Shown here: piece by piece, positions 7,568 through 62,794 of the stretch
Position numbering within the stretch: position 1 is the stretch's first letter
How the letters are laid out: every line of letters starts with the position of its first letter
Assembly: GCA_002269645.1 (NCBI GenBank)
Contig: NIVC01001794.1
Coordinates: 1-64,000 of the forward strand
Reading direction: 5' to 3'
Length of the DNA stretch: 64,000 nt
Source: Macrostomum lignano
Taxonomy: Eukaryota
The notes under the pieces: model-generated
Database searches by the model: none
Seen by the model: only the letters and a program-made list of their open reading frames with translations
What the model was told of the DNA's origin: nothing
Translations under genes and position numbers: made by a program

Positions 7568-13689
<6,122 letters not shown>

Positions 13690-14301
13690 GCGAATAGTTC
13701 TGGAATTGAAATCAATATTTCACTGAACACAATGCAAATCTGACAGTTAGAATAGAATATTTAAGCAGATTTAAATGCCATTTATATTTTTGTACCGGAA
13801 TATTTAAAAAAACATTTTTTGCAACTGGCCGGAAATTTTGCTGGAGGCTTTCGTTGCAAAATGCATTGGCGAGAGAAAAAAATTCAGTTTTTAGGACTAC
13901 GTCGTAAATTAGCAATGTGTCACCATCTGGACTTCCCCTAGCAGAAGCGTCTTTGTGCTTCAGTTGTCTGTGCTGTTCTACTGTATACCGAATTGCAGAC
14001 AGATTAAATATACAGAGCCTCTCAGGTAGAGTTGCTTGCTTTGCAAATAATGTGAATAAAAAACCCACAATCAACATTTGTAAGTCGACGCGTTTCGCGT
14101 GACGCAAAAAATTGATGAGTAAATAATTATTCTGCACATTATTATTGATGAATAATTATCGACCCATGTACATCTGACCATAAAATTGAGATTCTTTAGG
14201 CCATGCACATAAAAGCTTTGTCCCCCAACCTCAACACTCAACTCCAACATAGTGGCGCAGGCCATGTTCTCCGTGATTTTTAAGTTTTGAGAGAGAACGC
14301 G

Positions 14302-17300
14302 CACAGCACCCATGGAACATCTTTTAGGGAGAAAAAAAGTACGAAGCAATCCATTCAACTTTTCTTGTTCCATAGACACCTGTAGATGAAAAAAATGAAA
14401 AACAGAAAAAAAATTGCGATAGCTTCATGTTTTATAGCACTTTTTGAATTTTCATGTACTTTTAATTGGCAATAGAGGAAGATATTCCATAAAAACTGCC
14501 ATTTCAGCTTACAGGTCATTAGCGAAATAAATTCAGCTACCTTTTTATCCCATACAGCCAAATAAATAACTAAAGACTTGTTTACATTGAAGCTAGTATC
14601 TCCGCGAGTCACACACTAGTCAAATTAAAGTACCACTAGTCTTGCACAAAGTCTAGATTGATTTGAGTATTCAATGATCTACAGAGTAACTAAACCTTTA
14701 TTTCTGGCTCACATAATCGATAGCATTTGATTGGCCAAATCATTGTACACGCAGCTAAGCTGAATGAAATCAACCAATCGATTGCTTAACTTTAGGCGGC
14801 CAGTTTTTAACTTAACAGATGTACATCCACAAGACATTCACAATGCTGCACTCGTCTGAAAATTTCATGCCCGCAAGCAGGCCAACTATACGGTTCAATT
14901 AAAATGTACAATCATGCACTACAAACTCAGTAAACATCTCACAGTGATTGGAAAATCCACTCTATCCTAGCATAAAATAACGTCAACAAACTTCAAACAA
15001 AGTTATATTCTATCATCAGTTTTTATAGCACTTTTGATAGCTCTGCAATGCCTTCAACGGCTTTAACTCATTCGGAGAACCAATTGAAAGTATGCCTAAT
15101 CTGCTTTAAAAAAGGAGCATCTCATGAACCTATTCGTGACGCAAATCTACAACGCATCAATCGAAATTTTATCGAAGATATTGACATCACTGATGAAAGT
15201 CTTCCAGCATCTTTGTGCGCTCGGTGTCGCAAACTTCTTCTTGATGTCGACAGTGGTAGAAAGCCAGTGGATGCTCTGCCCCAACCATATGACTTCTCAA
15301 AAGTGAAGCAGACAGCAGTCACACGACAGAATCCCCTGTGCCATTGTGATCTGTGTGAAGTCGCCCGGATGACTCCTATTGGTCAGGAGCTTGGCTCTGT
15401 TAAAGTTCCGGCTCACCCGATTGGCCGGCCGAAGACATCCAACGACCAGCTGCCTGTAGCTTTACCAGCCAAAATCTGCCGACGCTGCCTTTGCATCCTC
15501 CGGCGAGGAGTCAGTCACTGCTGTACCACCACTCAACGCAGGGAAAACCTGTGCACAGAGTACTCTGTGGACCAGCGAGGGGCTGAGATGCACGCAGCCA
15601 AAGTAATCAAAAGAAAATCTGTCGATGCGCACGGTGCTGCTCCAATTCAACTGGCAACTCGTGGGTGTAATCTAACACTCAGTCTCCCAGCCCCATCACA
15701 AGCTAAAAACTCGGCTGCTTTTTACGATTCGCCGATCTCAGCATCTGAAATGAGCTGCTTTCAGCAGGCGCTGAGTCTAAGCAGACGGCAAACGAGGACT
15801 GCAGCGCAATTCTTCCATAAGTGGAAAGGGCGGAAGTCAATTGAAGCAGGCCTGGAGTCGAAGTTGCAGCAGCTGGACAGCAGCCTCAGCGAGTATTTTT
15901 CGGTGACCGATGCAGAGTTTGAGATCAGCGGCGGTCAGAAGAAGCGCTGCTCCGTCATATTCTGCAGGGACCCAGCAGGTCTCATTGATTACATGCTGCA
16001 ACACCGGAGGGCGCCTTTTGGTTCTGAGTTCGTTGCAAAAGTTGGAATGGACAGTGGTGGTGATTTTCTGAAAATCTGTCTCAGCCTCATAGTTGACACA
16101 TCAACTGATGCAAGTGACTTCGAGACTCAGGCTGCCGATGTCTGCTCAAGCCACTTTGCCGAAGGAGGTGTCAAGAGACTCATGCTACTAGGAATTGTTC
16201 AAGGAGTGAAAGAAACGTATGCCAACCTTAAGACCATGCTGGATCTTTTGAATATGAAAGGCGTCCGATATTACTGCTCGATGGACATGAAGATGGCCAA
16301 CATCTTCCTTGGGCTTCAGGCATGCAGCAGCTTGCATCCGTGTCCTTGGTGCGAGTGCAGGCGGAACCTTTTTGGTGATGCGCATCGTGACATCCAGCTG
16401 CGGACGCTCGGTGCCATTCGAAGAAATGCAGCCCAGTATCAGCAGGCAGCTCAGTAGCATCGGGGCAGTTTGCAGCTTGGAGCTGCCAACTTCAAGAATT
16501 GTGTGCATGATCCACTAACAGATCTGCCTGACGACACCGAGGTTCTAACGATCGTGCCTCCAATGGAACTGCACCTGATGCTGGGAATTACCAACCGGCT
16601 GCTGGAAGAACTGGACACGCGACTCCAAGCGACAAATGACTGTTCGGTGCGCATTGATGACTGGCTTGCTCGACTGGGAGTTCAGCGACAGCCTCAGAAT
16701 GGCAGGCAAATAAACGGAAATGACTGCGCGATAGCTTCGAGACCGCCGTGGCTCACTTTGCTCAGGCTTACGCGGATCTCGGTATTAGCACCACGCCGAA
16801 GGTGCACGCGCTGATTGAACACGTGGTGCCTTTCCTCTCAAGCGCTGACAACAGGGAAGCCCGACGTGGACTAGGCTTTTGGTCTGAGCAAGCTGGCGAA
16901 GCTGTGCATCGCGATTTCAACAGCCTGTGGTGCCGCAGCTACAAAGTTAGTCCTACAAATTCTCAGTATGCACAACAGCTGCTGAAGTGCACTGTTGCGT
17001 ACTGCTCGCGGCATTTGTGACCTGCTTTAATAGTAAGAACATTTTCTTTTTCTAAGTCTTTTTTTGTTTGCAATGGCAGATAGAAAAAATGTGTCTTTAA
17101 GCTATCTATAATATATTTGTTTATGGTAAAAACTTATTTAAAAAACACTATTTAAATTAGCCTCACACTCTGCATAAAGTTTTTTTTCTTCGGCCTGATA
17201 GTTAGAGTTAAGCAGGTAGCTGAATTTAATTCGCTGATGACCTGTAAGCTGAAATGGCAGTTTTTATGGAATGTCTTCCTGTTTTGCCAATTAAAAGTAC

Positions 17301-19015: not shown

Positions 19016-21917
<2,902 letters not shown>

Positions 21918-24894: not shown

Positions 24895-25090
24895 CTTATT
24901 GCTTGGCATGGACAGAGAAGCCACCTACCTCACTCTAATCACTTCTCATAGGCTAATATGAATAGGGAAGCCACTTGCCTCACCCCAGTCGCTTCTTATT
25001 GGCTTTACTAAATAGAGAAGTCACCCAACTCACTCCAGTCACTTTTCATTGGCTGAGATGAATAGAGAAGCCACCCACCTCACTCCAGAC
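24895..25090. repeat. 50-bp CCAAT-containing minisatellite (same family as 58945-59345), abutting the truncated start of ADAM copy 2
   Basis: Units are cattggctgagatgaatagagaagccacccacctcactccag, about 4 degenerate copies. Confidence 0.8.
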
Positions 25091-25574
25091 GAATAGGAAT
25101 CCTTCAGTGCCCAGGACTTTGACGGCGGCAAAACCCTCGGTTTAGCATGGCTAAGGGCTACCTGCAATAAGTTGTTCTCGTGCGGATTGGGTGATGTGAG
25201 TACAGGTTCGTAACCGTTGCTTTCTTCTTACCTGGTTGAGAGATACAAACCAATTCACAGAAGACAAGTTTGCATGAACCCGGAGGAGATCTCCACCGCT
25301 CTGGTTCTGACCCACGAGATCGGGCACAACCTCGGCTTCATGCACATGCAGGACTTCACTGCGTGCCAGTGCAATCGGTCGTCAACCGGCTGCATAATGA
25401 ACTCTTATCTCGCGTCCGAAACGCGGTGAGTGTGGAAATTTAACAGTTTACAGAAATTTGAACAGCTGTGAGCTGGTATCGGTTTTACAATCGATTTCCC
25501 ATGCTCCACTGCTGCACGGAAGCTCTGGGCTGGTCATCCTGCACCTTGGACACCTGGAGCTCGCAAGCCAGCGA

Positions 25575-25860
25575 GACAGACCGACACAAACAGACACAGA
25601 CAGACACAGACAGACACACAGAGACACAGACAGACACAGACAGACACACAGAGACACAGACAGACACAGACAGACACACAGAGACACAGACAGACACAGA
25701 CAGACACACAGAGACACAAACAGACACAGACAGACACAGACAGACACACAGAGACACAGACAGACACAGACAGACACAGACAGACACACAGAGACACAGA
25801 CAGACACAGACGCAGGCAGACACAGGCAGACACAGACAGACACAGACAGACACACAGACA
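25575..25860. repeat. (GACACA/CAGA) compound microsatellite at a deletion junction
   Basis: It joins ...SQASE of the post-catalytic exon directly to [10 protein letters not shown] of the Cys-rich exon. Confidence 0.9.
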
Positions 25861-28240: not shown

Positions 28241-29214
28241 ACGTTCGTACAAGATAAAACCAGGCAAGTCATTTTTGAACCCAAAACCAACCCGTAGATG
28301 TGCGTGAATTCGACCTGCACGCTGTTAAGCACGGTGCGCGCCTGCAGTTCATGTCCTGACTGCGGCGCCAACGGGGTGCTCACTACAGGCAGCGTCTGCT
28401 TCTGCAATCCGGGCTTCGCTCCGCCAAACTGTTCCACTGTAGGCTGCGGCGGCTCCGTGACGTCACCGCTGACCTGTTCCGGTGAGTATGCCGATGCAGC
28501 TCCAAACGCAATACCTTTGAAGAGCAAACAGAAGCATTTTAATTTCCTCATTTGATTTATAGGACCTGTGGGCACTACAGCGACACCGACTCGTGCATGG
28601 ACAACTGCCACCACTGGCACAACTGCCAAGACAGATGCGACTGCCACCACTGGCACTGCCAAGACAGATGCGACTGCCACCACTGGCACAACTGCCACCA
28701 CTGGCACAACTGCCACCACTGACACAACATTTCTTCTGCAAAGATTCACACTCAATCCCGATGGTGGAGTGAACTGTGGCGATCAGTTAGGCGCAGCCAT
28801 CAGCTCAATTATTTTCATGACATTGTCGACACTGACAATCATGATGAAGCGAGTAGTTCTGGAATTGAAATCAATATTTCACTGAACACAATGCAAATCT
28901 GACAGTTAGAATCCAATATTTAAACAGATTTAAATGCCATTTATATTTTTGTACCGGATTATTTAAAAAACATTTTTTGCAACTGGCCAGAAACTTTGCT
29001 GGAGGCTTTCGTTGCAAAATGCATTGGTGAGACAAAAAAATTCAGTTTTTAGGACTAAATTTCCAATGTGTCACCCTCTGGACTTCCCCTAGCAGAAGCG
29101 TCTTTGTGCTTCAGTTGTCTATGCTGCTCTACTGCACACCGAATTGCAGACAGATTAAATATACAGAGCCTCTAACGAGTTTTCCAAAACAAATCGATGA
29201 AGTAAAACTGGGTA

Positions 29215-29867: not shown

Positions 29868-31239
29868 GCTAAGAGGGACGCGTCTCGATAAATCAATCTG
29901 AAACTTTTAGGAAGCGATGACAAAAATATTAATGACGTTGAGACCTGACAAAGAATAACGAAATTGTAACAAACAGCTTGTAATTTATTTGATCGCGGAT
30001 CGCGGACATTCGAGGAAAAATTTATTGGTCCTCAAGATAAAGCCAATAATCCCAATTGTAATTGACTTAAGGGAACGCGAAAAAGTTAGATCTTGGTGCT
30101 TATAGCAGTGTTTTTTTGCATTGTTTAGCAATTTGACGATCATTATTCGCATTTTTTATGCAGAACAATACATTACTACAAACAATGCATTGTTTTTAGG
30201 ACCTTCAAACAGAAAAAAATGCAAAGAATCAGCGGTCGCAGCACGTGACAACGATTAGTCTATGGCTCGCGCTTACCGGCGCTCGCCAGACAATCGTTGT
30301 CACGCACTGGGACCGCTGATTATTTATCCATGGTTGCTCGAGGGTTGCTGTAATAATTATTAAATGTAATTTTGAGTGACTGCTTTATTCTACTTACCTT
30401 GTACTTACTCTCTCTCTCTCTCTCTCTCTCGGAAAAAATGAGTTGGTTTGCTATGTCATGGTGACCCATATTATAACGTCCATGACTGGCAAGAATTTTA
30501 AGCACATTTTTTCGAAACTGGCTTATAAAATGTGTAAATATCTGCTTATATTATCAATCAAAACCTGCTTTGACAATAAGACACTAGTCACAGAGATAGA
30601 CTATAAATAGATGCCCTGACACCAGGGCACTCTAGTCACAAAAATAGGAATTCAAAATGTAGACAATCAATAGAATGTTGTAGGATTTTGCTTTGCTACT
30701 TACTGATGGAACTAGTAAGTAGAATGCCAGGACCTGTGCGTCAATAAATATAGTTTGGGGTCCCTGCAGCGCGTCCTCCGCGCCCTATTTTAGGAAACAC
30801 TGACTGGGTGCTAATGGATATTAAATATTGGCTAGGATGATTCCCTCGGTAAATACATACAGTGTAGTTTCTCATATTTGATCGGCAAAAACTGATGAGA
30901 GGGACTCCAGGCCAGGTACTGCGAGATTTTCTCGATATACTGACTGTTTGGCAAGGCAATTAATCACACAGAGGCAACGTTTCTGCTTGCGGGCCGTTCC
31001 CGTGCAAACATAGCTAGCAGCTAGTTGATGACTTCTCTGAACTCCTCGGCTGGCCAATTACTGAATGGGACAGCTGGGGGTCGTCTGGTTGATGCAGCAT
31101 CGGAGTTAGGAAAATTCCTGCATTTATTGACAGGCGGCAATGCAGATAAAAGTGAGAAAATTTTGTGGACTTTGCGAATTCGGCCTGAGCCCATAATCTA
31201 AGGCAGCTCTGATCGCACGCAGCCCAGTCTGCAAGCAAA

Positions 31240-34200
31240 ATGTCAAAGAATCAAGTGGCAGCCTGTTTCCACGTTAAGGCGGACTCTGGGATGCCAGGCG
31301 AAGCGCCTCATCAGCCAGCGGCATCAGTTGAGGAGATTCTCTCCAGCTTCATCAAGTACGCCAGCCACAGCGGCATGCTGCCCGGCATGCAGAGGCAGGG
31401 TGCCAAGCGCACCGTGTTGACCGCTCTGGCAGTGCTGGCCAATGTCTTGATCTATGCCGAGTGTCTGGCTACCATGGTGATGTTCTTGCGCCTGCCAACG
31501 GCCCTGGATGCAAGCACAACTTTGCTGGTTGTGTCCATCATCTTTCACTCCTACTGTGCCTCGATCAGCTCTCTGTTCATATGGTCCAGCTGCTCGGGAA
31601 GGCTGAGCAGCTTTCTGCTCGATGTGGACGCAATACTGGCTGATTCGAGAGGCGTGCCTCAGCTGGAGGCGGCACTGCGACAGCGGTTCTTTCAGTACAA
31701 GGGTCTGCTCAGGAAGTTCTTTGCAGCGTTTTTCACTGCCGTAGTGATCAACTCGATCATGAGCGTGACCCTCATCATCATGGCTCCGAACCAGGTTCCT
31801 TTCATGTTCAACATCCGCATTGCGATGTTCGGCTCTGCAGGGACCGGTCACCTGCCAGCAGTCCACCAGGCTCCCTGGGCGCAGGTGGCCAGCCAGGTTG
31901 CCGCTTCGGTCTGGTGGATCTACAAGTCACTCCTGTGGAACTTCGGGTTTCTGCTCTTCTTCACCCTAGCTTGCATCCCTACCCACCTGCTGCTGGGCTA
32001 CAGTTCGGGGCTCGCGGCCCAAGTTCGAGAATCCCAGGGACTCACGGGAGACGCAGCCGCGGCCTATCGACTTTTCTATTTAAGGATCGCGGGCGCAGTT
32101 GAATCCGCTGACGCCATCGTACGCCTGTACCTGTGCGCCACCTTCCTGTTTAGCATCGTGGCCGTGATGTTCAACGTCAATGCTTTGATAGACATGAGCC
32201 AGGTGGATCAGCTGGTGACCTCAATCCTGGCCGTGTGGATCGGATCCAGCCTTCTGCTGCTTTGCCTGCCAGTTTTCATGTGCGGCAGAGTTTTGGTTCT
32301 GGTGAGGGCACGAAGCAGCTGCAAATCTTGTAGCTTGCGAGCTTCTTTGGATTAGTTTGTCAAGATTTATTTGGATTAAGGTCTTTTCTTATCTAGGTGT
32401 TATTTCAACTTTTGCTACACCAGAACTGAGCAAGACATTCACATGAAATTCAAGGACACGGGCTAAAGTTTTGTTGCGACAACTTCTCAAAAAAGAATCA
32501 GGAGTGTCCTTTGAATTCCCTTTGGAATTCAACGATTCTGCCAGAAGTTCGGATTTTTCCCATAAATACACTTCTGTGTGCCAATCAGCACCGCGTCTCA
32601 GTGCGGCCTTGCCAAGCCTTCAAACTTCTTCAGCATGTCAAGCGCACGTGTCTGCATCATATCTGATTTCGGTGGCCTCCGACCTTCAAATCCTCAAAAA
32701 TGGCTCAACCGATTTTCTTCAAACTTGCACCATTCGATCAGAAATTTTCCTGGGACGGTACATGCATCTTGGCTAAGAAATTGCTCAATGTTAAAGGGAT
32801 TAAATATTCGAAAAACATGCTTTTTTGAAAAGGTCAAGCCAAATTTTTGACTTGAATTGCATTGTAAGAATGCTAGAGAAAAAACTGACTGACTGAATTT
32901 ATATTCTGATAAATATTACATCACAACAAGTTGAAAACAGTGTCGAAGAAATGCGCACAAGACTTGATTAAAATTGCGTAACCATATTGCTAACTTCAAT
33001 TGAGACGGATACTGGCTGACTGAGAAATTGATTATGTCATACCTTTTTACACTAAACGACTTGCTGTAAGTATTGAATTATAAGGGCCAAAATTCATGTT
33101 CTCCAATTGAAAAGAGATAGTCTAGATGCGAACAGACTGGACTGCTAATGTAGCGACCTGGGTTCGAATCTTAGTAGTGCAAAATAATTTTTATATTAAA
33201 GCACCTTAAAAACACGAAACTGCTAAACATAAAAGAAGCACAATGTCAAACATTGAAGAGCCACCATGTAAAACATAAAAGAGTCACTATTTCGAACATT
33301 AAAGAGCCACCACGTCGAACATTAAAGTGCCACTATGTCAAACATTAAAGCGCCATCATGTCAAACATGTATGTGACTGCATGTCAAACATAAAAGAGCC
33401 ACCATGTCAAACATTAAAGAACCACCATGTCGAACATTAAAGAGCCACCATGTCGAACATTAAAGAGCCACCATGTAGAATATTAAAGAGCCACTATGTC
33501 AAACATTAAAGAGCCACTATGTCAAACGTAAAAGTGACTTTATGTCAAACATATCAGTGTTTTTATGTCAAACATTAAAGAAGCACCATTTCGAACATTA
33601 AAAAGCCACCATTTCGAATATTAAAGAGCCACCATGTCAAACATTAGAGAGCCACCATGTCAAACATAAGAGAGCCACCATGTCAAGCATAAAATATACA
33701 CAATTTCAAACGTAAAAGTATTGCAAGCCAATGCCAATTTTTAGTCATGCCAATTTTTAGGAGCCACTATAAAGCTAAGGAAATTGTCGCACTAGCTACT
33801 TTTGTCTGGTGGATGCTTGCTATTTGGGGATACTTGCTATCTGGGGGGGGGGTGCTTGCTATCTGGGGGATGCTTGCTATCTGGGGGTGCTTGCTATCTG
33901 GGGGATGCTTGCTATCTGGGGGATGCTTGCTATCTGGGGGATGCTTGCTATCTGGGGGATGCTTGCTATCTGGGGATGCTTGCTATCTGGGGGATGCTTG
34001 CTATCTGGGGGATGCTTGTTATCTGGGATGCTTGCTATCTGGGGGATGCTTGCTATCTGGGATGCTTGCTATCTGGGGGATGCTTGCTATCTGGGGGATG
34101 CTTGCTATCTGGGATGCTTGCTATCTGGGTGATGCTTGCTATCTGGGGGGTGCTTGCTATCTGGGTGATGCTTGCTATCTGGGGGATGCTTGCTATCTGG

Positions 34201-37200
34201 GGGGTGATTGCTATCTGGGTGATGCTTGCTGTCTTGGGATGATTTCTTTTTGCATTGCACTTCATTTGAGCAGTTTGTCGGTTTTCTTTGTGAAGGTTTT
34301 TTTGTATGTCAAATATTAAACAGCCACCATGTCAAACATATACGTGACTACATGTCAAACATAAAAGAGACACCATGTCGAACATAAAAGAGCCACCATG
34401 TCGAACATTAAATAGCCACCACGTCAAACATTACAGAGCCACCATGTCGAACATTAAAGGGCCACTATTTCAAACATTAAAGAGCCACCATGTCAAACAT
34501 TAAAGAGCCACCATGTCAAACATAAAAGAGCCACTATGTCAAAAAAACACGTGACTTCATGTCAAATATTAAAGAGCCACCATGTGAAACATACACGCGA
34601 CTCCATCTCAAACATTAAAGAGCCACTATGTCAAACATAAAAGAGCTACCATGTCAGACATAAAAGAGCTACCATGTCAAATATACAAAAGCCATCATGT
34701 CAAACATAAAAGGGACACCATGTCGAACATAAAAGAGCCACCATAGAGAACATTTAAGAGCCACCATGTCAAACAATAAAGAGCTACCATGTCAAACATA
34801 GAAGAGCCACCATGTTAAACATAAAAGAGCCACCATGCCAAACATAAAAGAGCCATCATGTCAAACATATATGTGACTCCATGTCAAACAGTAAAGAGCC
34901 ACCATGTCAAGCATAAAAGAGCCACCATGTCAAACATAAAAGAGCCACCATGTCAAACATAAAAGAGCCACCATGTCAAACATAAAAGAGCCACCATGTC
35001 GAACATAAAAGAACCACCAAGTCCAACATAAAAGAGCCACCATGTCAAACATTAAAGAGCCACCATGTCAAACATTAAAGAGCCACCATGTCAAACATAT
35101 ATGTGACTCCATGTCAAACAGTAAAGAGCCACCATGTCAAGCATAAAAGAGCCACCATGTCGAACATAAAAGAGCCACCATAGAGAACATTTAAGAGCCA
35201 CCATGTCAAACATTAAAGAGCTACCATGTCAAACATAGAAGAGCCACCATGTTAAACATAAAAAAGCCACCATGCCAAACATAAAAGAGCCACCATGTCA
35301 AACATATATGTGACTCCATGTCAAACAGTAAAGAGCCACCATGTCAAGCATAAAAGAGCCACCATGTCGAACATAAAAGAGCCACCATGTCGAACATAAA
35401 AGAGCCACCATGTCGAACATAAAAGAACCACCATGTCGAACATAAAAGAACCACCATGTCAAACATTAAAGAGCCACCATGTCAAACATTAAAGAGCCAC
35501 CATGTCGAAGATTAAAGAGCCACCATGTCTAACATTATAGAGCCACCATGTCGAACATTAAAGAACCACCATTTCAAACATTAAAGAGCCATCATTACAT
35601 TAAGGTGCCACCATGTCAAACATTAACGAGTCACCATGTCAAGTATATTCGTGACTCCATGTCAAACATAAAAGAGCCACCATGAAGAACATTAAAGAGC
35701 CACCATGTCAAACATTAAAGAGCCACCATAAAAGATACACAATTTCAAACGTAAAAGTAAGCGTCATGCCAATTTTAAAGGAACCACTGTAGAGCTAAGG
35801 AAATTGTTGCACTAGCTACTTAATGTCTGGGGGAAGCTTGCTATTTGGGGGATGCTTGCTATCTGGGGGATGCTTGCTATCTGGGGGATGCTTGCTATCT
35901 GGGGGATGCTTGCTATCTGGGGGACCTGGGTTCGAATCTTAGTAATGCAAAATAATTTTTTTATTAAAACACCTTGAAAACACGAAACTGCTAAACATAA
36001 AAAAAGCACAATGTCAAACATAAAAGAGGCACCATGTCAAACATTACATGGGCACCATGTAAAACATATACGTGACTCTATGTCAAACATTAAAGAGCCA
36101 CCATGTAAAACATAAAAGAGTCACCATTTCGAACATTAAAGAGCCACCACGTCGAACATTAAAGTGCCACCATGTCAAACGTAAAAGAGCCACCACGAAG
36201 AACATTAAAGAGCCACCATGCCAAACATAAAAGAGCCACCATGTCAAACATTAAAGATCCACCATGTAGAATATTAAAGAGCCACTATATCAAACATTAA
36301 AGAGCCACTATGTCAAACGTAAAAGTGACTTTATGTCAAACATATCAGTGACTTTATGTCAAACATATAGGTGTTATTATGTCAAACATTAAAGAACCAC
36401 CATTTCGAACATTAAAGAGCCACCATTTCGAACATTAAAGAGCCACCATGTCAAACATTAGAGAGCCACCATGTCAAGCATAAAATATACGCAATTTCAA
36501 ACGTAAAAGTATTGCAAGCCAATGCCAATTTTAAGTCATGCCAATTTTAAAGGAGCCACTATAAAGCTAAGGAAATTTTCGCACTAGCTACTTATTGTCT
36601 GGTGGATGCTTGCTATTTGGGGATACTTGCTATCTGGGGGGGGGGTGCTTGCTATCTGGGGGATGCTTGCTATCTGGGGGATGCTTGCTATCTGGGGGAT
36701 GCTTGCTATCTGGGGGATGCTTGCTATCTGGGGGATGCTTGCTATCTGGGGATGCTTGCTATCTGGGGGATGCTTGCTATCTGGGGGATGCTTGCTATCT
36801 GGGGGATGCTTGCTATCTGGGGGATGCTTGCTATCTGGGGGATGCTTGCTATCTGGGGGATGCTTGCTATCTGGGGGATGCTTGCTATCTGGGGGATGCT
36901 TGCTATCTGGGGGATGCTTGCTATCTGGGGATGCTTGCTATCTGGGGGATGCTTGCTATTTGGGGGATGCTTGCTATCTGAGGGGTACTTGCTATCTGGG
37001 GGATGCTTTCTCTCTGGGTGATGCTTGCTGTCTTGGGATGATTTCTTCATTTGAGCAGTTTGTCGGTTTTCTTTGTGAAGGTTTTTTTGTATGTCGAATA
37101 TTAAACAGCCACCATGTCAAACATTAAAGAGCCACCATGTCAAACATTAAAGAGCCACCATGACAAACATTAAAGAGCCACCACGTCAAACATTAAAGAG

Positions 37201-39590
37201 CCACCATGTCGAACATTAAAGAGCCACTATGTCAAACATTAAAGAGCCATCATGTCAAACATTAAAGAGTCACCACGTCAAACATTAAAGAGCCACCATT
37301 TCGAACATAAAAGAGCCACTATGTCAAACAAACACATGACTTCATGTCAAATATTAAAGAGCCGCCATGTGAAACATACACGTAACTCCATCTCAAACAT
37401 TAAAGAGCCACTTTGTCAAACATAAAAGAGCTACCATGTCAGACATAAAAGAGCCACCATGTCAAATATACAAAAGCCATCATGTCAAACATAAAACAGC
37501 CACATATACGTGACTTAATGTCAAACCTTAAGGAGCCACCATGTCGAGCATTAAAGAGCCACCATGTCGAACATTAAAGAGCCACCATGTCAAACGTAAA
37601 AGAGCCACCATGTCAAACATAAAAGAGCCACCATTTTAAACATATACGTGACTCCATGTCAAACATTAAAGCGCCATCATGTCAAACATATATGTGACTG
37701 CATGTCAAACATAGAAGAGCCACCATGTCAAACATAGAAGAGACACCATGTCAAACAAAAAGAGCCACCATGTAATATATAAAAGAGCTACCATGTAAAA
37801 TATAAAAGGGCCATCATGTCTAACATTTACGTGACTCAATGTCAAACATTAAAGAGCCACCATGTCGAACATTAAAGAGCCACCATGTTAAACATAAAAG
37901 AGCCACCATGCCAAACATAAAAGAGCGACCATGTCAAACATATACGCGACTCCATGTCAAACATTAAAGCGCCATCATGTCAAACATATATGTGACTGCA
38001 TGTCAAACATAAAAGAGCCACCATGTCAAACAAAGAAGAGACACCATGTCAAACATAGAAGAGCCACCATGTCAAACATAACAGAGACAACATTTCAAAC
38101 GTAAAAGGGCCGCCATGGTGAACATAGAAGAGCCACTATGTCAACATTAAAGAGCCACCTTTTTAAACATAAAAGAGACAACGTTTCAAACATAAAAGAA
38201 GTGTCATGCCAAACAAAATGGAGCCACTATAAATCTAAGGAAATTGTTGCACTAGCTACTTTCTCTGGTGGATGCTTGCTATTTAAGGATGGATACTTGC
38301 TATCAAGGGGATGCTTGCTATCGGAAGGATGCTTGCTACTGGGGTAACTTGCTATTGGGAGATGCTTGCTCTTGGGGGTGGAGGGTAATTGCTATCTAAG
38401 AGGGGGTTGCTAGATATCTATAAGGTCTCTTTGTATCCAGGTTAATGCTTGCTATCTGGGGGATGCTTGCTATCTGGGGGATGCTTGCTATCAGGGGTTG
38501 CTTGCAGTCTCGGGGATGCTTACTATCTGGGGTCTGGGGGATGCTTGCTATCTGGGGGATGCTTGCTATCAGGGGTTGCTTGCTATCGGGGGGATGCTTG
38601 CTATCTGGGGGATGCTTGCAGTCTGGAGGATTTCGCTATTTGGGGATCGATGCTTGAATGCTGTCTGAGGATGCTTGCTGTCTTGGGATGTTTTGTTTTT
38701 AGAGGGAATGTCTGTTGTTTTTTATGAAGGCTTTATTTTGCTGTCTATTTGTTATTTGTAAAGAACAAGGATTCTATCCAGATGTCCCCCATCGGGGGGC
38801 AAATATTGCTAGTTCTTAACTAAATTCTTAACTAGTCTCTCAAGCATTCAGTCATCATCCTAACGCACTTTCTGCAGATAGCACCTGTGACTATTGTCTG
38901 GCAATAAAAAGTTAATCCTGACCTTGAGTTTCGTATGCCTGCGAGAAGGACTGGACAGCGCGGGAAACGTATTTCGATTGGTTGCATAAGAGAAGTTAAG
39001 TTACTGGGGCTATGAGACTCAAGATACGAGCTAGCAACACACAGTCGCTAATATGAGGATTGTCCAACGCGTATTGCACTATCGCCAGGTTCCACGAACC
39101 GCGCATGCAGTTAGCAAAGGTTTCACTGTCCGGTGAATTAAGAAATCTGCTTTTAATTTGCAGGTCAAGAAGCCTTTAAACGTTCTGCAGCGGCAAGAGA
39201 TCACGAAAAATAACTTTAAAGAGGTAAATCGGTTATCAGCATCAACTATTTAGCTTATCCAAGCATTCCTACGCACCTTACCGGTTGAATTCAATTCCCA
39301 GCTTCTAGTGCTTCTGGAGGTGGTGAACAGCAGCAGCTGCGGCATCACCTGCGCCGGCCTCTTCACCATTGACTATTCGCTGATTCCAAGCGTGAGCCAC
39401 ATCAACCTCGTGTTGCTTCTTTACTCCGAAATTAGGTTATAAACTTGATGCTGCAGCTGTTTTATTATTGAAATTTCAGCTCACCGGACTGCTGCTGACG
39501 TACTTCATTCTGATTGTGCAGACACGGCAGGGCGCTGGCGGCCCCGGCTGTCCCAGTGGGGGCGGCGCTTTCAACGGCTCAGCGCTCTGA
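31240..39590 (+). CDS. Gustatory receptor-like (GRL / 7tm_7-type) multi-pass membrane protein, about 440 aa
   Basis: Exons are 31240-32301, 39164-39223 (VKKPLNVLQRQEITKNNFKE), 39302-39391 (LLVLLEVVNSSSCGITCAGLFTIDYSLIPS) and 39480-39590 (LTGLLLTYFILIVQTRQG...*). All three introns are phase 0 with GT-AG ends. There are about 7 hydrophobic segments and the GR-type motifs AGLFTID and TYxxxxxQ. Confidence 0.82.
33160..38700. repeat. Higher-order compound minisatellite in GRL intron 1: two ~2.76-kb super-units, each A-B-A-B
   Basis: A is a 22-bp unit (aaacattaaagagccaccatgtc-like) and B is an 18-bp unit (tgcttgctatctggggga). A recurring linker (..gagccactataaagctaaggaaattgtcgcactagctact) precedes each B block. 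Both super-units start with gacctgggttcgaatcttagta (about 33162 and 35924). Confidence 0.9.
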
Positions 39591-39747
39591 GTGACAGCTG
39601 CATGAATGAAAAGAGAGTGGAGAAAATTGACAGCAAACAAAATCTTCACTGATGATCAATGGAAGACCGCTTGAACTAGATCTACCATCTAAGATACAAT
39701 TGAAACCGAAGAATAGCCAATCATCCTGCCGGGCATTCCACTGTTGA

Positions 39748-39803
39748 CCCTAAACCTAACCCTAACCCTAAACCTAACCCTAACCCTAACCCTAACCCTA
39801 ACC
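39748..39803. repeat. Interstitial telomeric repeat (CCCTAA)9
   Basis: Seven CCCTAA plus two ACCTAA units, starting about 160 bp after the GRL stop codon. Confidence 0.85.
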
Positions 39804-40399: not shown

Positions 40400-40580
40400 C
40401 GTATATTTGTGTTGAACAGCAACTCCTGTGGAAGTTCGAGTTTCTGTTCTTCTTCACCTTAATTTGCATCCCTACCCACCTGCTGCTGGGCGACTGGGTT
40501 CGCGGCCCAAGTTCGAGAATCTCAGGGTCTCACGGGGGACGCAGCCGCGACTTATCGATTTTTCTATTTAAAGATCGCAT
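40400..40580 (+). pseudogene. Frameshifted fragment of a second GRL paralog
   Basis: LLWKFEFLFFFTLICIPTHLLLG matches LLWNFGFLLFFTLACIPTHLLLG (about 31930-32000). DNA similarity continues to ttttctatttaaagatcgc. Confidence 0.8.
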
Positions 40581-41010
40581 CCTGAAGGAAAGCCAGCGTG
40601 GACCACTGAAGCCCGCATCGCCAGATCTCGACTAAAAAACGGATGTACGAGACTTACTACAAGTAACAAACTATCGGCTGTGGCTCCGACACCGACACGG
40701 TGGCTGTGACACCCTGCATACAGAGACCACAGTGTGAATGAATGTGCGTGAATGAACTCATGGACCAAGCCGCCCACCTCGACCAGGCGGACGTCCCAAC
40801 GACCCTCCGCGCCGCCAGCCAGATATGACAGCCACTGGCTTATCCAGACCTGCACTTATCAGCTTATCAACCAGTTGCTCGTCGGGGCGAGCACCCCCGA
40901 CGGCAGCACGCACCACCGCATGGGCCCCGCGGATACGCCCAACTGCCCGGACTGTGATGAACCCAAGAAGGTGTAGCACATCCTGCAGTGCTGGCCACGT
41001 GGCGACCGCT
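40580..41010 (+). mobile_element. Degenerate non-LTR retrotransposon 3' fragment (zinc knuckle)
   Basis: HRMGPADTPNCPDCDEPKKV*HILQCWP resembles the H.G...P.C..C...E...HIL..CP knuckle of LINE ORF2. Confidence 0.5.
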
Positions 41011-41945: not shown

Positions 41946-51460
<9,515 letters not shown>

Positions 51461-56775: not shown

Positions 56776-59700
56776 TCAGTGCTGCATTGGCTCACCTCGA
56801 GCTCCGCCTCGTCTCTCGGCGTCCCGTTCGGCTTTCCAAGCGGCAATTCGATTGCGAAGCTCAGGCAGCTCTTTCAGATCGGACTCGGACATGGGCATCT
56901 TCGAGTAGGGATTGGTGGCCGAGTTCAACAGGTGGCGTCTGATGGTGGCTCGGTCCAGAATCTGAAAGTTTGGGAACGGGGAGACAGCAGGGGGATCAGG
57001 CTGCGGCAGACAGTTGAAGAGGATCTGGCACAGTGAAGATCTGAGAGGCTGCCCTAGCAACTGAGAAGGCTGGCCTATGTAATGTGAGTATCTTTCGGAT
57101 TGGTGGCATTTTATTAGTTAGTTACTCGTAGTTTCTGTATTATTGTTGTTAATTATTCTATTTTGCTTTAATTTAGTCACGCGGTTCAATGTACTTTTTG
57201 TCTAGTTTAGAGTTTGTTTTGCGTAAACAGGCTAGAAGTCAGACGCCAATTCTGTGACCCAGCGGAGGGTTGAGTTTCCTGCGTACCCCAAGCTTTGCGC
57301 GACCAGCTAATCAGAATCGGCCTGGACCCTGGCACGCGGCAAAATCCAAGTCTACCCGGCGCCGCGGGCCCAGTGCAAATCAGCTTAGCGAGCGGCCGGC
57401 CAGACGACCACCACCCGGCTTGAGGGGGGTCACTTCTCTTTCCCCTTCTGTTTTCTGGCCTTTGGTTTTGTCCCAACTTTTCGGCCGTTTTGCCCTATTT
57501 GTTTCGCGCTTTGAGGCGCCTGGTTGTTCGTCACCCCCAGTCCGTGATTTGTTCCCCTGCCCAACCGTTTCAGTCTTGTAGCGTAACGTCTACGGCAAAT
57601 TGTTGTCTGAAGGCGTCGTTATTAAGCGCGGTCTAGTTAGAGACTGACGGATTCGACCAAGTACGTGGCCTCGACCCCGAGGGCCTCAGTGTGGCACTGA
57701 GGGGCAGCGCTGATAGAACTTAGCCAGAGCTCCGCTAAACGGTCGATTCGTCAGGGCTCTCGTTTGAGCGTAGGTTCTGGTTTAGGCCAGTGGTTAGGAG
57801 TCTTTCTCCGTGGTCCCGTGTTCGGTTCCTTCTTCTTCAAGCTGAGATCCGCTCACCAATTGCGTAATTAATTATTATTAATCGTTGTATCGTTATTGTT
57901 TCGTTATCATCAGTGCTCAATTTATCTGCATCGCGAATTACGTATTAAGGATTGTAATCAACCTAAATTCATTATATTATATACTCCGAGTCAAATTAGC
58001 CATTCTTGAACTAGGATTATCACTCTCTAAATCTATTCGATCGTGTTCACCTGTGTTCCTTCCTTTTCTTGTACCGTACTGCGACTATTGGAGAAAGATT
58101 GGTAGAACTCGCCGACCGGCGATAGGCAAATAGGCCAATAGTTTTAAAATCTTCGTACGCTCCGAAAATAGGTTCGTCTAGGGCCTAATTTATTTGCCGT
58201 ATCGTATTTCGTATATTCGTATTTATCACACCTAGCAACTGAGAAGGCTGGCCTAGCAACCGAGGATCTGGAAGGGTGGCCCAGCAACAGAGGACCTGAG
58301 AGGCTGGCACATTGAGAGACATGCAGACAAAACGCACCTGTCCAGTGGGCAGCTCCACAGGGTCGGACATGAGAGTGAACATCATCTCGTCCATGAACTC
58401 GTCCGGCGCATTGTCATAGTCCAAGTCAACCTGCCGCCTGGCATTGGCGATCTCGTCTGTCCGCTTCCGCAGCCGCTCCAGCACCTGCAGATCCATCTCG
58501 GAGCGAATGCCGGCCCGTCGGATGCGTTCGATAGCCTGGGGGAGCAGCGACTCCGAGTAGCTGCGCTCGTCATTCACAATGGCCTCCTGGAACTCGGGCT
58601 GGGCGGCCAGATTCAAGTAGATGGTGATAAAGTTGCTCAGCATGGACCTCGGCTCCCAGCCGTATTTGTCCGGGCTTCGAACTTTCAAAGTGTTGCACTT
58701 GCTGCCGCAGAGCTGCTTGAGATTGTAGTTGAGCATAGTTGCTAACCGCTCTACTAGTTCGCCGTTCATGAAAGCCCTGGGCAGCTCTTGAGTCAGGTAG
58801 TTGAACATTTCCACCGTTTTTAGCGACAGGGTCAGGTAGGATTTCACCTGCAGGTTGGTGTTAGTCATTCCTTAAGTTTTCTAAAGCAGTTTGTGAAAGT
58901 TTTGGCTGCGAGAAATCAATAATAACCCGCTACGAAGTCGCTCCTTATTGCCTGGCATGGACAGAGAAGCTATCCACCTCACTCCAGCCGCTTCTCATTG
59001 GTTGAGACAAACAGAGAAGTCACCCACCTCATTCCAGCCGCTTCTCATTGGCTGAGACAAACAGAGAAGCCACCCACCTCACTCTAGTCGCTTCTCATTG
59101 GCTGAGACAAACAGAGAAGCCATCTACCTCACTCCAGCCGCTTCTCATTGGCTGAGACAAACAGAGAAGCCACCCACCTCACTCCAGTCGCCTCTCATTG
59201 GCTGAGACAAATAGAGAAGTCACACAACTCACACCAGTCATTTTTTATTGACTACAGCGAATAGAAAAGGCACCACTTCACTTCAGCAACTTCTAATTGG
59301 CTGAGATGAATGCAAAAATTACCCACCCAACTCCACATTTTATTGGCGCTGAACATTTCATTGGCTAACACCGTCCAAACCAACTGTTCCTTACAAGTCT
59401 TTCACCCGTATAACATAAACGCACCTGTCTCTCATTGTTATTCAGCTCCTGTTTAAGTTCTCCCTGCTGTTCGGCGGTGCAGCCTTGAAAGCCGGAATCT
59501 GCAAGGTCCTGAATCTCTCGGATTCGTTTCAAACAGCCGAGACTCTCGTCCAACAGGTAGGTGGCATCGTTAATTAACACGTTGACAAATCGTACAAATA
59601 CGGGATTCTGAGACTGTCGACGGAACTGCTCCCTGTGCAGGTGGGTCGCCCAGAGGCTGTGAAATATAGTGGCCAGGTGATAGCGAATGGTGAACTTGTC

Positions 59701-62700
59701 GTAGAACTCGCTGCTCGAGCCCGTGCTTTCAACTTCCACGTAGAATTGCAACAGGCTAGTGACTAATCCGTCCAGACTCCACTGCTGCATCACCAGGTCT
59801 TGGAACTGAGCCTCCATACGAGGCTGCACAGTGGGATCAAGATAAAATAGTATCTCAACTAGCTTGGAAACCAGATGGGGATTGCGCACCAGCGGATACG
59901 GATGAGACAGAGCCGCAATCACCAGGCGGAAGCAGCGTGGCACAGGGGTCTGCTTGAAGTAGCCGGGCTGGAATTCGATTACCAGCACGAGCAGTTCGCA
60001 CATGTCCTCTAGAAAGAACTCAGGCAGGCTGCGCAGCTCTTTGCACTGCTGCGGCTCGCCGTACTGCAGCAGGGAGAGCAGCCAGTCGGCCAGCTGATCG
60101 TAGTAGAACATGGCGTCTCTCAGCAGCGACTCGTGGTAGATTGCCGCCTAGCAGAGATGGATCAGCGTAAGCAATGCCAACTTAGCGACAATTGTTAATT
60201 GTCTTCATAACCCGAGCTTAGTCTTCATAAGCACTATTATTCTCTAAATACTAAAGCAGAGTCAATCCGATGAAAACGGTACCTAGGCATAGAAGCTTCC
60301 TAGCGTCACTTGCGTCGCCCCATAGTCGTTGCAGGTAACACAGGTAAAATACGATAAAGATGTCTCGGTACAAGTCGACAAAAAGTCGTCAATGAGTCAA
60401 TTTGAGGTGTTCTAATATCTGCGACTCTGAAAAGACTCTTGTGCGACAACAGTCACTCTGGTAGATTTGTATCTGAGGCGTGGTGGAGTCGCTGTAGAAT
60501 CACTGAGTTGCATCTCTAAAGCGCATCTGCGTCACTTTATGAATAAGACAACCTACTGCGCATAATCTACTTGAGTTAGTAGAAAGTTAAGCGCTAACAC
60601 AGCGATTTTTAGACGACTTTCTGCAACTCAGGCGTGATGCGCTCGTGACCCAACAGTCAATTGAGCCGGTAAAAAGTTACAAGATTCGCCCCAGAGTCGC
60701 TAGAGCCACTAGTTTGCAATGACTCCTTAGCCATTCTTGTCACGGTTTTAATGCTTTTAACGGGTGAGTTAATAAAGGATTCAAAGACACCGGTACGGAA
60801 CTTGAATTATTCACGGAACGCTCACCTGATCGCACAGTTTAGCTCGCTTCTGACTGTTGAGAAATGTCCGAATCCTGTCGGCATTTTGCGCCTGCTCTCC
60901 GCTGTCCAGGATGCGTTCCGCTTCACGCAGATTGCGCAGTCTGCGCTTATGCTTGCGCAGCGTCGCAATCAGGCCGATGTGGTGCGCGTAGGCGGCCAGA
61001 AAGAAGCCCTGCGTGTTGAAGCTGGCCGCCTCGGTGCCCAGCTCGCCTCGCCAGGCCGCCACCTCGCCGGCGTTCGCCATCAGGCGGGCATCGTCATCCT
61101 GATAATTAGTTATTTATGGGTGATGATGGACCTAGTGATGATGCATTAATCCACCTGCCCCTTGATGCACCACCTGTCCCTTGCACCACCTGGACCACCT
61201 GCCCCTTGATGCACCACCTGCCACCTGCATCACCTGGACCACCTGTCCCTTGCACCACCTGTCCCTTGCACCACCTGTCCCTTGCACCACCTGTCCCTTG
61301 CACCACCTGACCCTTGATGCACCACCTGTCCCTTGCACCACCTGTCCCTTGCACCACCTGACCCTTGCACCACCTGACCCTTGCACCACCTGCCCCATGA
61401 TGCACCACCTGCCCCTTGATGCACCACCTGTCCCTTGCACCACCTGCCCCTTGATGCACCATCTGACCCTTGCACCACCTGACCCTTGCACCACCTGCAC
61501 CTTGATGCACCACCTACCCCTTGATGCGCCAGTGCACTGCACTGAACTCACTTTGATCGGAAACGGGCAGTCGGGCCTCAGCAAGAATGCCCGATCAACT
61601 TTGTCCAATGGAATCTTAGCGGCCAATTTGCACAGAGTCGCCTGCAGATTCAACAGGAAGCCTTCGCTTAGAGCGGACGATTCGTCGAATTGCATCTGGC
61701 CGCGGCTGGAGCCGAGCCGGCAGCAGCGCCAGAGCAGACGCAGCACCTCCGGGCGGCACTGCGGCTCGCGTAGCAGCGAATAGAGCAGCTGGTACTGCCG
61801 ATCGCGGGCCACGTCCAGAGCCGTGTGGATAACTCGATGACTCATCAAAACCTCTTCTGGGCTCAGATTGTCCACCACTGGGAACAGTTCCTCGGCCACT
61901 TCAAACTAGGTAACACGATGATGCGATGGTGCACATTGAGTTTGCTTTTTAAATTATCGTTGAGCTCCGCTAGGTTGCATAAAATCATTTCACTTCTACA
62001 CATGGTACCCAACCCATTTTTATTGAAAGCGTTATTATTTTAAGTCGCCATATGCCCAAGTAAATAAATATTTGCATGATTTGTAGGCATTCAAGCAGGC
62101 GCACAACCAACAGTGACTGTGAGGCAATTCTGCTCATTCAGCTTTCTACTAACTACGCTCGTATTTCTGGTTTAAGTGACCAATTAATTACAGCAACTTA
62201 CAGACTCCGACGCGAACGGAGATAAGCAGAGAAACGCGGGCAGAAAAGACAGCCGTTCGAACAGCACCGGCACCTCAGTATTGTAATTCCAGTTCTCCAT
62301 CTGAAGCAGGAATCTGGCAAATACTCGGACACCATCAATTTGCAATTCGACCAATTCAATAATCATCTGCAGGACAGCTTTGTAGAAAGTCTCAGTCAGT
62401 CTTTGACGCTTCATCAGCGTGTGCAAATCGGTGAATAGCCGGCTAAAGACCTCGGCTCGGACGTCAGCTGGCAGCTCTTGCCACAGAACCGTAACCAGGC
62501 CAGAGTCGCCAGACTCGAGCAGATGTGGCGTCAGCGGACTCAAGGCCGACATTGGCGCAGTGAAAGTGCCGGCAGCCAGCAGGCCCAAGTAGTGAACAAG
62601 GATTGCCCGGACTTCGGTCGGATGCGACCGGGACAGCAGCTCGGAGATGTGAGTAACTCCGGCTACACCGTGGACTCGAAGGCCGCATAAGGGGCGGCCA

Positions 62701-62794
62701 GCAGATAGAAACTGACTGCTTGGACCGCCCACCTGGCTAGCAAGGTAATCTAATGCAGAGTCAGCATCTCGCAGCTCTATGTTAGTGCTCATGT
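56776..62794 (-). CDS. UBE4B: Ubiquitin conjugation factor E4 B (Ufd2 core + U-box); possibly 5'-incomplete
   Basis: Exons on the minus strand are 62202-62792/62794, 61552-61905, 60826-61098, 59425-60147, 58338-58847 and 56776-56961, all phase 0, giving 878 aa from the ATG at 62792. Motifs include RNPHLVSKLVE, SEFYDKFTIRYH, FVRFVNVLINDATYLLDESL, LATMLNYNLKQLCGSKC and the U-box APDEFMD..LMSDPV..ILDRATIRRHLL. A possible acceptor (ctaag) just upstream of the ATG means further upstream exons cannot be excluded. Confidence 0.93.
57078..58230. mobile_element. Solo LTR (probably Ty3/Gypsy) in the last UBE4B intron
   Basis: It begins TGTAAT and ends ATCACA, with a perfect 4-bp TSD CCTA (57074-57077 and 58231-58234). 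It interrupts a short ctagcaactgagaaggctggc repeat. Confidence 0.8.
58945..59345. repeat. 50-bp minisatellite with one CCAAT box (ATTGG) per unit in a UBE4B intron
   Basis: Period 50 (cattgg at 58996 and 59046), about 8 units. Confidence 0.9.
61140..61530. repeat. Intronic short-unit minisatellite (gcaccacctg[t/a]ccctt[gat])
   Basis: It fills the UBE4B intron 61099-61551. Confidence 0.9.

Follow-up and report, generated by a model that had tools for sequence, protein, structure and literature searches.

We report that contig NIVC01001794.1 (assembly GCA_002269645.1), of which positions 1 to 64,000 were analysed (64 kb, hereafter the window), carries on the plus strand between positions 31240 and 39590 a four-exon gene that is very probably an intact nuclear gustatory-receptor-like (GRL) gene of a non-arthropod invertebrate. 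Profile matches, the predicted fold, the predicted topology and the positions of the introns support that its product belongs to the gustatory receptor (GR)/GRL family (7tm_7) within the superfamily of seven-transmembrane ion channels (7TMICs), and its description as a ligand-gated cation channel is modelled on insect structures.

Structure of the gene

An earlier note on this DNA had proposed a long hydrophobic first exon and three short 3' exons 6.9 kb away, joined by phase-0 introns. We read positions 31000-32600 and 39000-39800 and assembled the exons by script, and all coordinates as well as the quoted peptide were reproduced. Specifically, exon 1 (31240-32301, 1062 nt) extends from the start codon to aa 354 and ends at the donor CTG/GTGAGG (the slash marks the exon boundary); it encodes an N-terminal cytoplasmic segment with a re-entrant helix, S0, followed by the transmembrane (TM) segments TM1 to TM6. 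Exon 2 (39164-39223, 60 nt; aa 355-374, VKKPLNVLQRQEITKNNFKE) lies between the acceptor tttaatttgcag/G and the donor GAG/GTAAAT, corresponds to the cytoplasmic linker between TM6 and TM7 and aligns without gaps to AKKPLEILHRLEITSKNDKE of Macrostomum lignano. Exon 3 (39302-39391, 90 nt; aa 375-404; acceptor ttcccag/C, donor AGC/GTGAGC) covers helix S7a, a beta-hairpin and the beginning of S7b, and exon 4 (39480-39590, 111 nt including the stop codon; aa 405-440; acceptor aaatttcag/C) encodes the pore helix S7b with T411-Y412-FILIV-Q418-T419, followed by a Gly-rich tail that carries an NGS sequon and is predicted to be extracellular. All four exons are on the plus strand.

The length of every exon is divisible by three, and hence introns 1 to 3 (32302-39163, 39224-39301 and 39392-39479, plus strand; 6862, 78 and 88 nt, respectively), all with GT..AG ends, are in phase 0; they come after aa 354, 374 and 404. 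The spliced coding sequence (CDS) of 1323 nt translates into 440 aa with no internal stops, and its C-terminal end is ...CAGLFTIDYSLIPS/LTGLLLTYFILIVQTRQGAGGPGCPSGGGAFNGSAL followed by the stop codon (also written ...AGLFTIDYSLIPS/LTGLLLTYFILIVQTRQGAGGPGCPSGGGAFNGSAL), i.e. it reads ...TYFILIVQT and continues into the Gly-rich tail.

Exon 1 is part of a 371-aa open reading frame (ORF) starting with ATG, which ranks third by length among the open frames of the window. The earlier note had called the gene invisible in the ORF track; this was mistaken for exon 1, and only the three short 3' exons are easily missed. Given the base composition of the window, the number of 371-codon open frames expected by chance is ≈2e-5, and a chance origin of the exon 1 frame is thus unlikely. 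The GC content at third codon positions is 0.72 for the whole CDS compared with a GC content of 0.41 for intron 1 and of 0.47 for the window as a whole. An antisense ORF of 180 aa (31324-31866), located wholly within exon 1 on the opposite strand, was dismissed, no search having been made with it.

A six-frame profile search of the window identified a single copy of each exon, colinear and on one strand. Moreover, neither tblastn nor this profile search revealed further or alternative GRL exons in the 64 kb (alternative first exons, which some insect Gr loci have, were also looked for), with the exception of a pseudogene fragment 0.8 kb downstream of the gene. This paralogous exon 1 fragment of 157 bp (40422-40578, plus strand) matches aa ≈227-284 and is frameshifted: it is 87% identical at the nucleotide level to 31929-32090 with a length difference of 5 nt, its tblastn match is split over two frames, and the profile match is found at 40463-40582. 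The fragment is a decayed duplicate GRL copy and provides evidence of local duplication and decay. Between gene and fragment, ≈160 bp past the stop codon, there are ≈9.5 copies of (CCCTAA)n (39747-39803), an interstitial telomere-like repeat of the TTAGGG type and not of the arthropod TTAGG type.

Intron content and intron positions in relatives

Intron 1 consists mostly of alternating minisatellite arrays (33225-38645) with units of 23 bp (ATGTCAAACATAAAAGAGCCACC) and 18 bp (TCTGGGGGATGCTTGCTA). It also contains a higher-order duplication of ≈2.3 kb, in which 33155-35427 and 35923-38200 are 87% identical.

To place the introns we used an alignment, A1, consisting of the 440-aa protein and ten relatives, among them the longer cluster mates from M. 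lignano and Patella (see below). Introns 1, 2 and 3 fall at columns 576, 604 and 634 of A1, the last being the characteristic last GR/GRL intron just 5' of the exon that encodes the TM7 motif. For three of the relatives the exons were mapped exactly on the genomic loci and the boundaries were placed on A1. Lineus (P0008) has phase-0 introns at all three columns; Owenia (P0003) shares those at 604 and 634 and has none at 576, while Ramazzottius (P0009) shares those at 576 and 634 and has none at 604, also in phase 0. Columns and phase shared with the present gene are therefore 3/3, 2/3 and 2/3, respectively. In M. lignano, the shorter isoform (P0001) has its read-through precisely at column 604, the site of intron 2, and this points to an intron at that column in the M. 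lignano relative as well.

Three phase-0 introns at the 3' end constitute a hallmark of the GR family (PMC9998090). The earlier note had invoked this hallmark, and the positions are indeed identical to those of introns in the GRL genes of a nemertean, an annelid and a tardigrade. The predicted junction between 32301 and 39164, across the long first intron, is based on homology and on the conserved intron position, and the shared intron columns constitute strong independent backing for it.

Homology to the GR/GRL family

The sole Pfam match of the protein is to 7tm_7 (PF08395; E 1.9e-5; 2 bits short of the gathering cut-off), where aa 182-419 align to profile positions 141-366 of 370; this is the family that the earlier note had named for a check. 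No GPCR (G-protein-coupled receptor) family was matched in Pfam by the 440-aa protein, even at E<=10. An exhaustive phmmer search of 1.84 billion representative proteins gave 11 relatives, and the ten that were looked up by cluster are all from non-arthropod animals: M. lignano, the bivalve Solemya, the annelids Owenia and Dimorphilus, the limpet Patella, the nemertean Lineus, the nematode Plectus and the tardigrade Ramazzottius. The best match is M. lignano A0A1I8J111 (P0001; E 8.5e-21, 44% identity), and its longer cluster mate, A0A1I8J294 (P0012), is labelled "Gustatory receptor" in UniProt. The non-arthropod origin that had been suspected from the sequence is thereby upheld: the nearest relative is a flatworm protein, a TTAGGG-type repeat adjoins the gene, and a neighbouring gene (UBE4B, see below) is at best 49% identical to its database match.

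Each of the 11 sequences in A1 has a 7tm_7 match with E<=0.001 (best 1.7e-20), and in the alignment G388, F395, T411 and Q418 are invariant, with Y412 nearly so. A profile generated independently from nine non-flatworm GRLs, with the query left out, scored 130.7 bits against the spliced protein (aa 66-424) and 68.7 bits against exon 1 alone; in the six-frame translation it detected exons 1, 3 and 4 each separately. The A1 profile was also searched against all PDB sequences. This resulted in 15 matches at E<=2e-6, all of them insect (Drosophila Gr64a and Gr43a, Bombyx Gr9 [BmGr9], Orco and odorant receptors [ORs] of the MhOR5 type), the best of which (E 9.2e-14) is nearly end to end, covering profile positions 22-403, and the remainder had E>0.1. 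A word-indexed search with A1 returned only P0009, already an A1 member.

Predicted fold and topology

Structure prediction using AlphaFold2 with A1 as alignment gave a model with a pLDDT of 71.7 and a pTM of 0.70. The model shows a short N-terminal helix (S0) and seven long helices, of which the last is split; its C-terminal part is composed of a helix at 369-384, strands at ≈390-396 (the hairpin) and a helix at 401-423. An arrangement of S7a, beta-hairpin and S7b has been described for GRs (PMC12635824). A single-sequence AlphaFold model (pLDDT 44) was set aside and not used. When the A1-based model was compared with the PDB using Foldseek, 23 matches were obtained at E<=5e-4, with TM-scores of 0.53-0.75, and all are insect GR, OR or Orco chains; the next match had E 0.07 and a TM-score below 0.2. 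The structural comparison proposed in the earlier note thus yielded, at this threshold, Orco, OR and Gr structures only.

The 440-aa protein has seven hydrophobic segments. There are 19 Lys and Arg residues on the side of the N-terminus and the TM2-3, TM4-5 and TM6-7 loops and three on the other side, and on the basis of this distribution the N-terminus is predicted to be inside and the C-terminus outside. This is the inverse of a GPCR and agrees with the seven TM segments and the intracellular N-terminus anticipated earlier. The NGS sequon of the Gly-rich tail would then be outside, and several of the relatives carry N-x-S/T in the same tail.

The pore motif and a possible mode of action

The TM7 motif of the family, TYhhhhhQF, is represented by T411-Y412-F-I-L-I-V-Q418, i.e. 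Thr, Tyr, five hydrophobic residues and Gln, with Thr (T419) in place of the terminal Phe. This substitution and the short Gly-rich extension had both been noticed before and are both present. At the position equivalent to 419 in A1 the M. lignano relative also has Thr and Ramazzottius has Met. Not every family member has the terminal Phe: Y/F/W and a variant motif occur in Drosophila Gr36 and Gr59c/d (PMC9998090), the TM7 motif is weaker in ORs (PMC11100771), and motif divergence is regarded as compatible with channel function (PMC7746228). The missing terminal Phe is here treated as a variant, not as exclusion from the GR family. That the M. lignano relative carries the same Thr suggests a lineage feature and not a lesion.

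In BmGr9 the pore is lined by the motif 436-TYLVILIQF-444, in which T436 forms a hydroxyl ring, Y437 touches pore-penetrating lipids and I440 serves as the inner hydrophobic gate; in the closed state F444 forms the outer plug, at opening Q443 swings inwards, and the F444A change raises the EC50 and lowers the currents (PMC11100771). An ungapped alignment of the motifs gives T411, Y412, L415, Q418 and T419 in the present protein, and S404 is located at the second hydroxyl-ring position (T429 in BmGr9).

By analogy with these insect receptors, the most likely function is that of a subunit of a tetrameric ligand-gated cation channel. Four subunits would be arranged around a central pore lined by S7b, where T411 and S404 would form hydroxyl rings, Y412 would touch lipid head groups and L415, the middle hydrophobic residue of the motif, would act as the inner hydrophobic gate. 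A ligand in the extracellular half of the S1-S6 bundle would drive the movement of Q418, which would swing into the pore upon opening and admit cations. With T419 instead of the outer Phe plug, only the inner gate would be left to close the pore, and a difference from insect GRs in gating or in basal conductance is probable. Since F444A in BmGr9 raised the EC50 and reduced the currents, T419 should alter gating and not abolish the channel. A sensory role, chemical or other, is our default guess.

We also considered that the Q-T ending might mark a flatworm-lineage GRL clade that lacks the outer Phe plug and gates by the inner hydrophobic ring only, which at present appears rather doubtful. In such a clade the channel would differ in its resting conductance or in ion access and might be tuned to a stimulus other than taste, and the clade would represent a natural experiment on the F/Q gate switch of insect GRs.

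Other features of the window

The remaining content of the window is ordinary animal nuclear DNA, i.e. UBE4B, two fragments of the reprolysin type, an ORF of mucin-like repeats and transposon debris. Exons of UBE4B (ubiquitin conjugation factor E4 B), comprising Ufd2P_core and the start of the U-box, are located on the minus strand at 58185-62792; the best-scoring database match of these exons is from a snail (49% identity), and no match is above 59% locally. The ORF at 61132-61899 passes from a real Ufd2P_core exon into a 16/35-bp minisatellite (61151-61531), probably intronic. Exon fragments of a reprolysin (ADAM-type M12B metalloprotease) are present on the plus strand at 8827-9228 and 43240-43413. 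Their flanks are alike (8490-8788 vs 42737-43035, 79%), and the fragments seem to belong either to two paralogous ADAM-like genes or to a segmental duplication. The open frame at positions 47856-51460 is very long (948 aa, then 247 aa) and made up of a 90-bp repeat in ≈34 copies; the frame is Ser/Thr/Pro/Glu-rich and mucin-like with a hydrophobic stretch at the end, and it has no Pfam match.

An inverted repeat of 1.08 kb with 99.3% identity (19016-20094 vs 21917-20842) occupies 19016-21917. An ORF with a match to RNase H (20015-20431, E 1.5e-5) begins in its left arm and enters the 0.75-kb spacer, and the structure probably represents a young transposable element or else a retroelement that has been rearranged. 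The second-longest ORF of the window (15048-16457, 469 aa) has a Cys-rich N-terminus and a weak match to DUF1280 (E 0.009, under the cut-off), and may be transposon-derived. Dispersed repeats pair 9251-9773 with 25073-25577 (87%), 13036-14022 with 28244-29173 (89%) and 10628-11395 with 45808-46584 (94%), and they include (TGTC)n and coding-like minisatellites of 18 bp; this points to a repeat-rich genome or to partial segmental duplications.

Alternative explanations

Several observations weigh against an intact GRL gene that encodes a channel. The first intron, 6.9 kb long and filled with satellites, is unusual beside introns of 78 and 88 nt. The 7tm_7 score is 24.6 bits, i.e. 2 bits under the gathering cut-off of 26.6, and the terminal Phe of the TM7 motif is replaced by Thr. 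With the single protein as query, no PDB sequence was matched by phmmer at E<=10 and none of 5.8 billion proteins by a word-indexed search, and family membership consequently depends on profile and fold evidence. Furthermore, the alignment used for AlphaFold2 has only 11 rows and the model is weak at aa 1-53, at aa 180-209 and in the tail, while channel activity, the tetrameric state and any ligand are extrapolated from solved insect GR structures.

Among the other explanations, the one that survives best is that the gene encodes a genuine GRL that does not work as an external chemoreceptor, a possibility of some weight even if we hold it to be unlikely. Non-chemosensory roles have been described and functional data are sparse outside insects (PMC7746228). 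One intact copy and one fragment in 64 kb, together with a single flatworm cluster among all database matches, are low counts unlike those of a large expanded chemoreceptor repertoire. However, most characterised members of the family are ligand-gated chemoreceptors, and the sequence does not separate chemosensory from other roles.

We find it improbable that the gene is a silent or decaying copy, intact by chance or recently inactivated, in which the satellite-swollen intron 1 blocks splicing. Both the 6862 nt of minisatellites with their higher-order duplication and the frameshifted paralogous fragment 0.8 kb downstream would be in keeping with this, the latter fitting the birth-and-death turnover typical of chemoreceptor families. 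Nevertheless, the splice sites are canonical and the 1323-nt frame stays open over the four exons, there is a strong GC bias by codon position, the conserved positions G388, F395, T411, Y412 and Q418 are all kept with only the terminal Phe lost, and the intron boundaries are preserved to the codon.

It is also very improbable that the model is chimeric, in the sense that exon 1 and the three 3' exons derive from different gene copies whose true partners are lost or located outside the window. The two parts are 6.9 kb apart and the nearby paralogous fragment shows that local duplication has occurred. On the other hand, each exon occurs once, in colinear order and on the same strand in the six-frame profile search, with no candidates between the parts or upstream; in addition, the exon 1 donor is at a conserved intron column and the M. 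lignano homolog runs without a break over the junction. Finally, a GPCR, or an unrelated multi-pass membrane protein that is GR-like in composition only, would account for the seven hydrophobic segments and is a negligible alternative, as Foldseek gave TM-scores of 0.14-0.22 (E above 1) for GPCRs vs 0.53-0.75 for GR, OR and Orco, the charge bias predicts the N-terminus inside, and Pfam yielded no GPCR family.

Relation to known GR and GRL proteins

An intact GRL gene, the reading that we prefer, has to be seen against what is known about the family. GRLs have been documented across Protostomia and in some Deuterostomia, Cnidaria and Placozoa; the survey names annelids, nematodes, molluscs, echinoderms, hemichordates, cnidarians and placozoans, and flatworms are not named (PMC7746228). 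Our literature search found no paper that discusses flatworm GRLs, which is weak evidence as most subscription journals are outside its coverage, and one study did not find homologs of LITE-1 or Gr28b in the planarian Schmidtea (PMC5533540). The earlier note had regarded the gene as a candidate from a lineage where GRLs are poorly characterised. As a candidate GRL it stands; yet GRLs outside arthropods are well documented, and the Macrostomum relative is labelled in UniProt. The family is already known in many invertebrates, and the only unusual feature here is the Thr-for-Phe gate variant, shared with the M. lignano relative.

The gene leaves the known distribution and mechanism of the GR/GRL family unchanged. 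Non-arthropod GR-like proteins are catalogued yet almost untested, and the present gene adds a full-length flatworm-like GRL sequence where the public relative is a C-terminal fragment only. It also confirms that three ancestral phase-0 introns persist in this lineage, and its natural Thr in place of the gate Phe could serve as a test of the model of gating that came from BmGr9 and Gr43a.

Compared with the insect proteins BmGr9, Drosophila Gr43a and Gr64a, and Orco and the ORs, the present protein has the same fold according to Foldseek and a near-full-length profile alignment. It shares with them the re-entrant helix S0, the S7a/hairpin/S7b arrangement, four residues of the pore motif (T, Y, the middle hydrophobic one and Q), and the three phase-0 3' introns. 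They differ in that identity is only 9-14% and that the outer hydrophobic plug (F444 in BmGr9) is Thr here; because the residues of the ligand pocket are not conserved, the insect GRs do not suggest a ligand. Non-arthropod members of the same family include C. elegans LITE-1, GUR-3 and an egl-47-type homolog as well as a Nematostella GRL, and non-taste roles have been documented for such non-insect members (PMC7746228); none of these is among the phmmer matches of the present protein.

The GRLs of spiralians and ecdysozoans are closer, i.e. those of Lineus longissimus (XP_064619349), Owenia fusiformis (CAH1789215), Solemya velum (KAL5017309), Patella caerulea (KAK6173002), Ramazzottius varieornatus (GAV04482) and Plectus sambesii (A0A914UTV3). 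These resemble the present protein in length class, in the 7tm_7 match (under the cut-off in the present protein), in the positions and phase of the C-terminal introns and in a short tail after TM7, often with an N-x-S/T sequon. Overall identity to the non-flatworm rows of A1 (including Dimorphilus P0007 and Lineus P0010 and P0011) is only 15-23%, nearly all of them end in QF (QM in Ramazzottius) in contrast to QT here, and the TM3-TM4 loop is longer and poorly modelled in the present protein.

The closest likeness is to M. lignano A0A1I8J294 (P0012), whose 180 aa in A1 show 43% identity. The alignment is gap-free and colinear across all three splice junctions of the present gene, and the two proteins share the variant motif TYF(I/V)LI(V/I)QTRQ, with T for F, and the IDYSL segment. 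The M. lignano entries differ in being C-terminal fragments (132 and 180 aa), and the tail of the relative is Ser/Ala-rich with NCS, whereas here it is Gly-rich with NGS. As the identity is only 43-44%, the M. lignano entry would represent a paralog, or an ortholog from another species.

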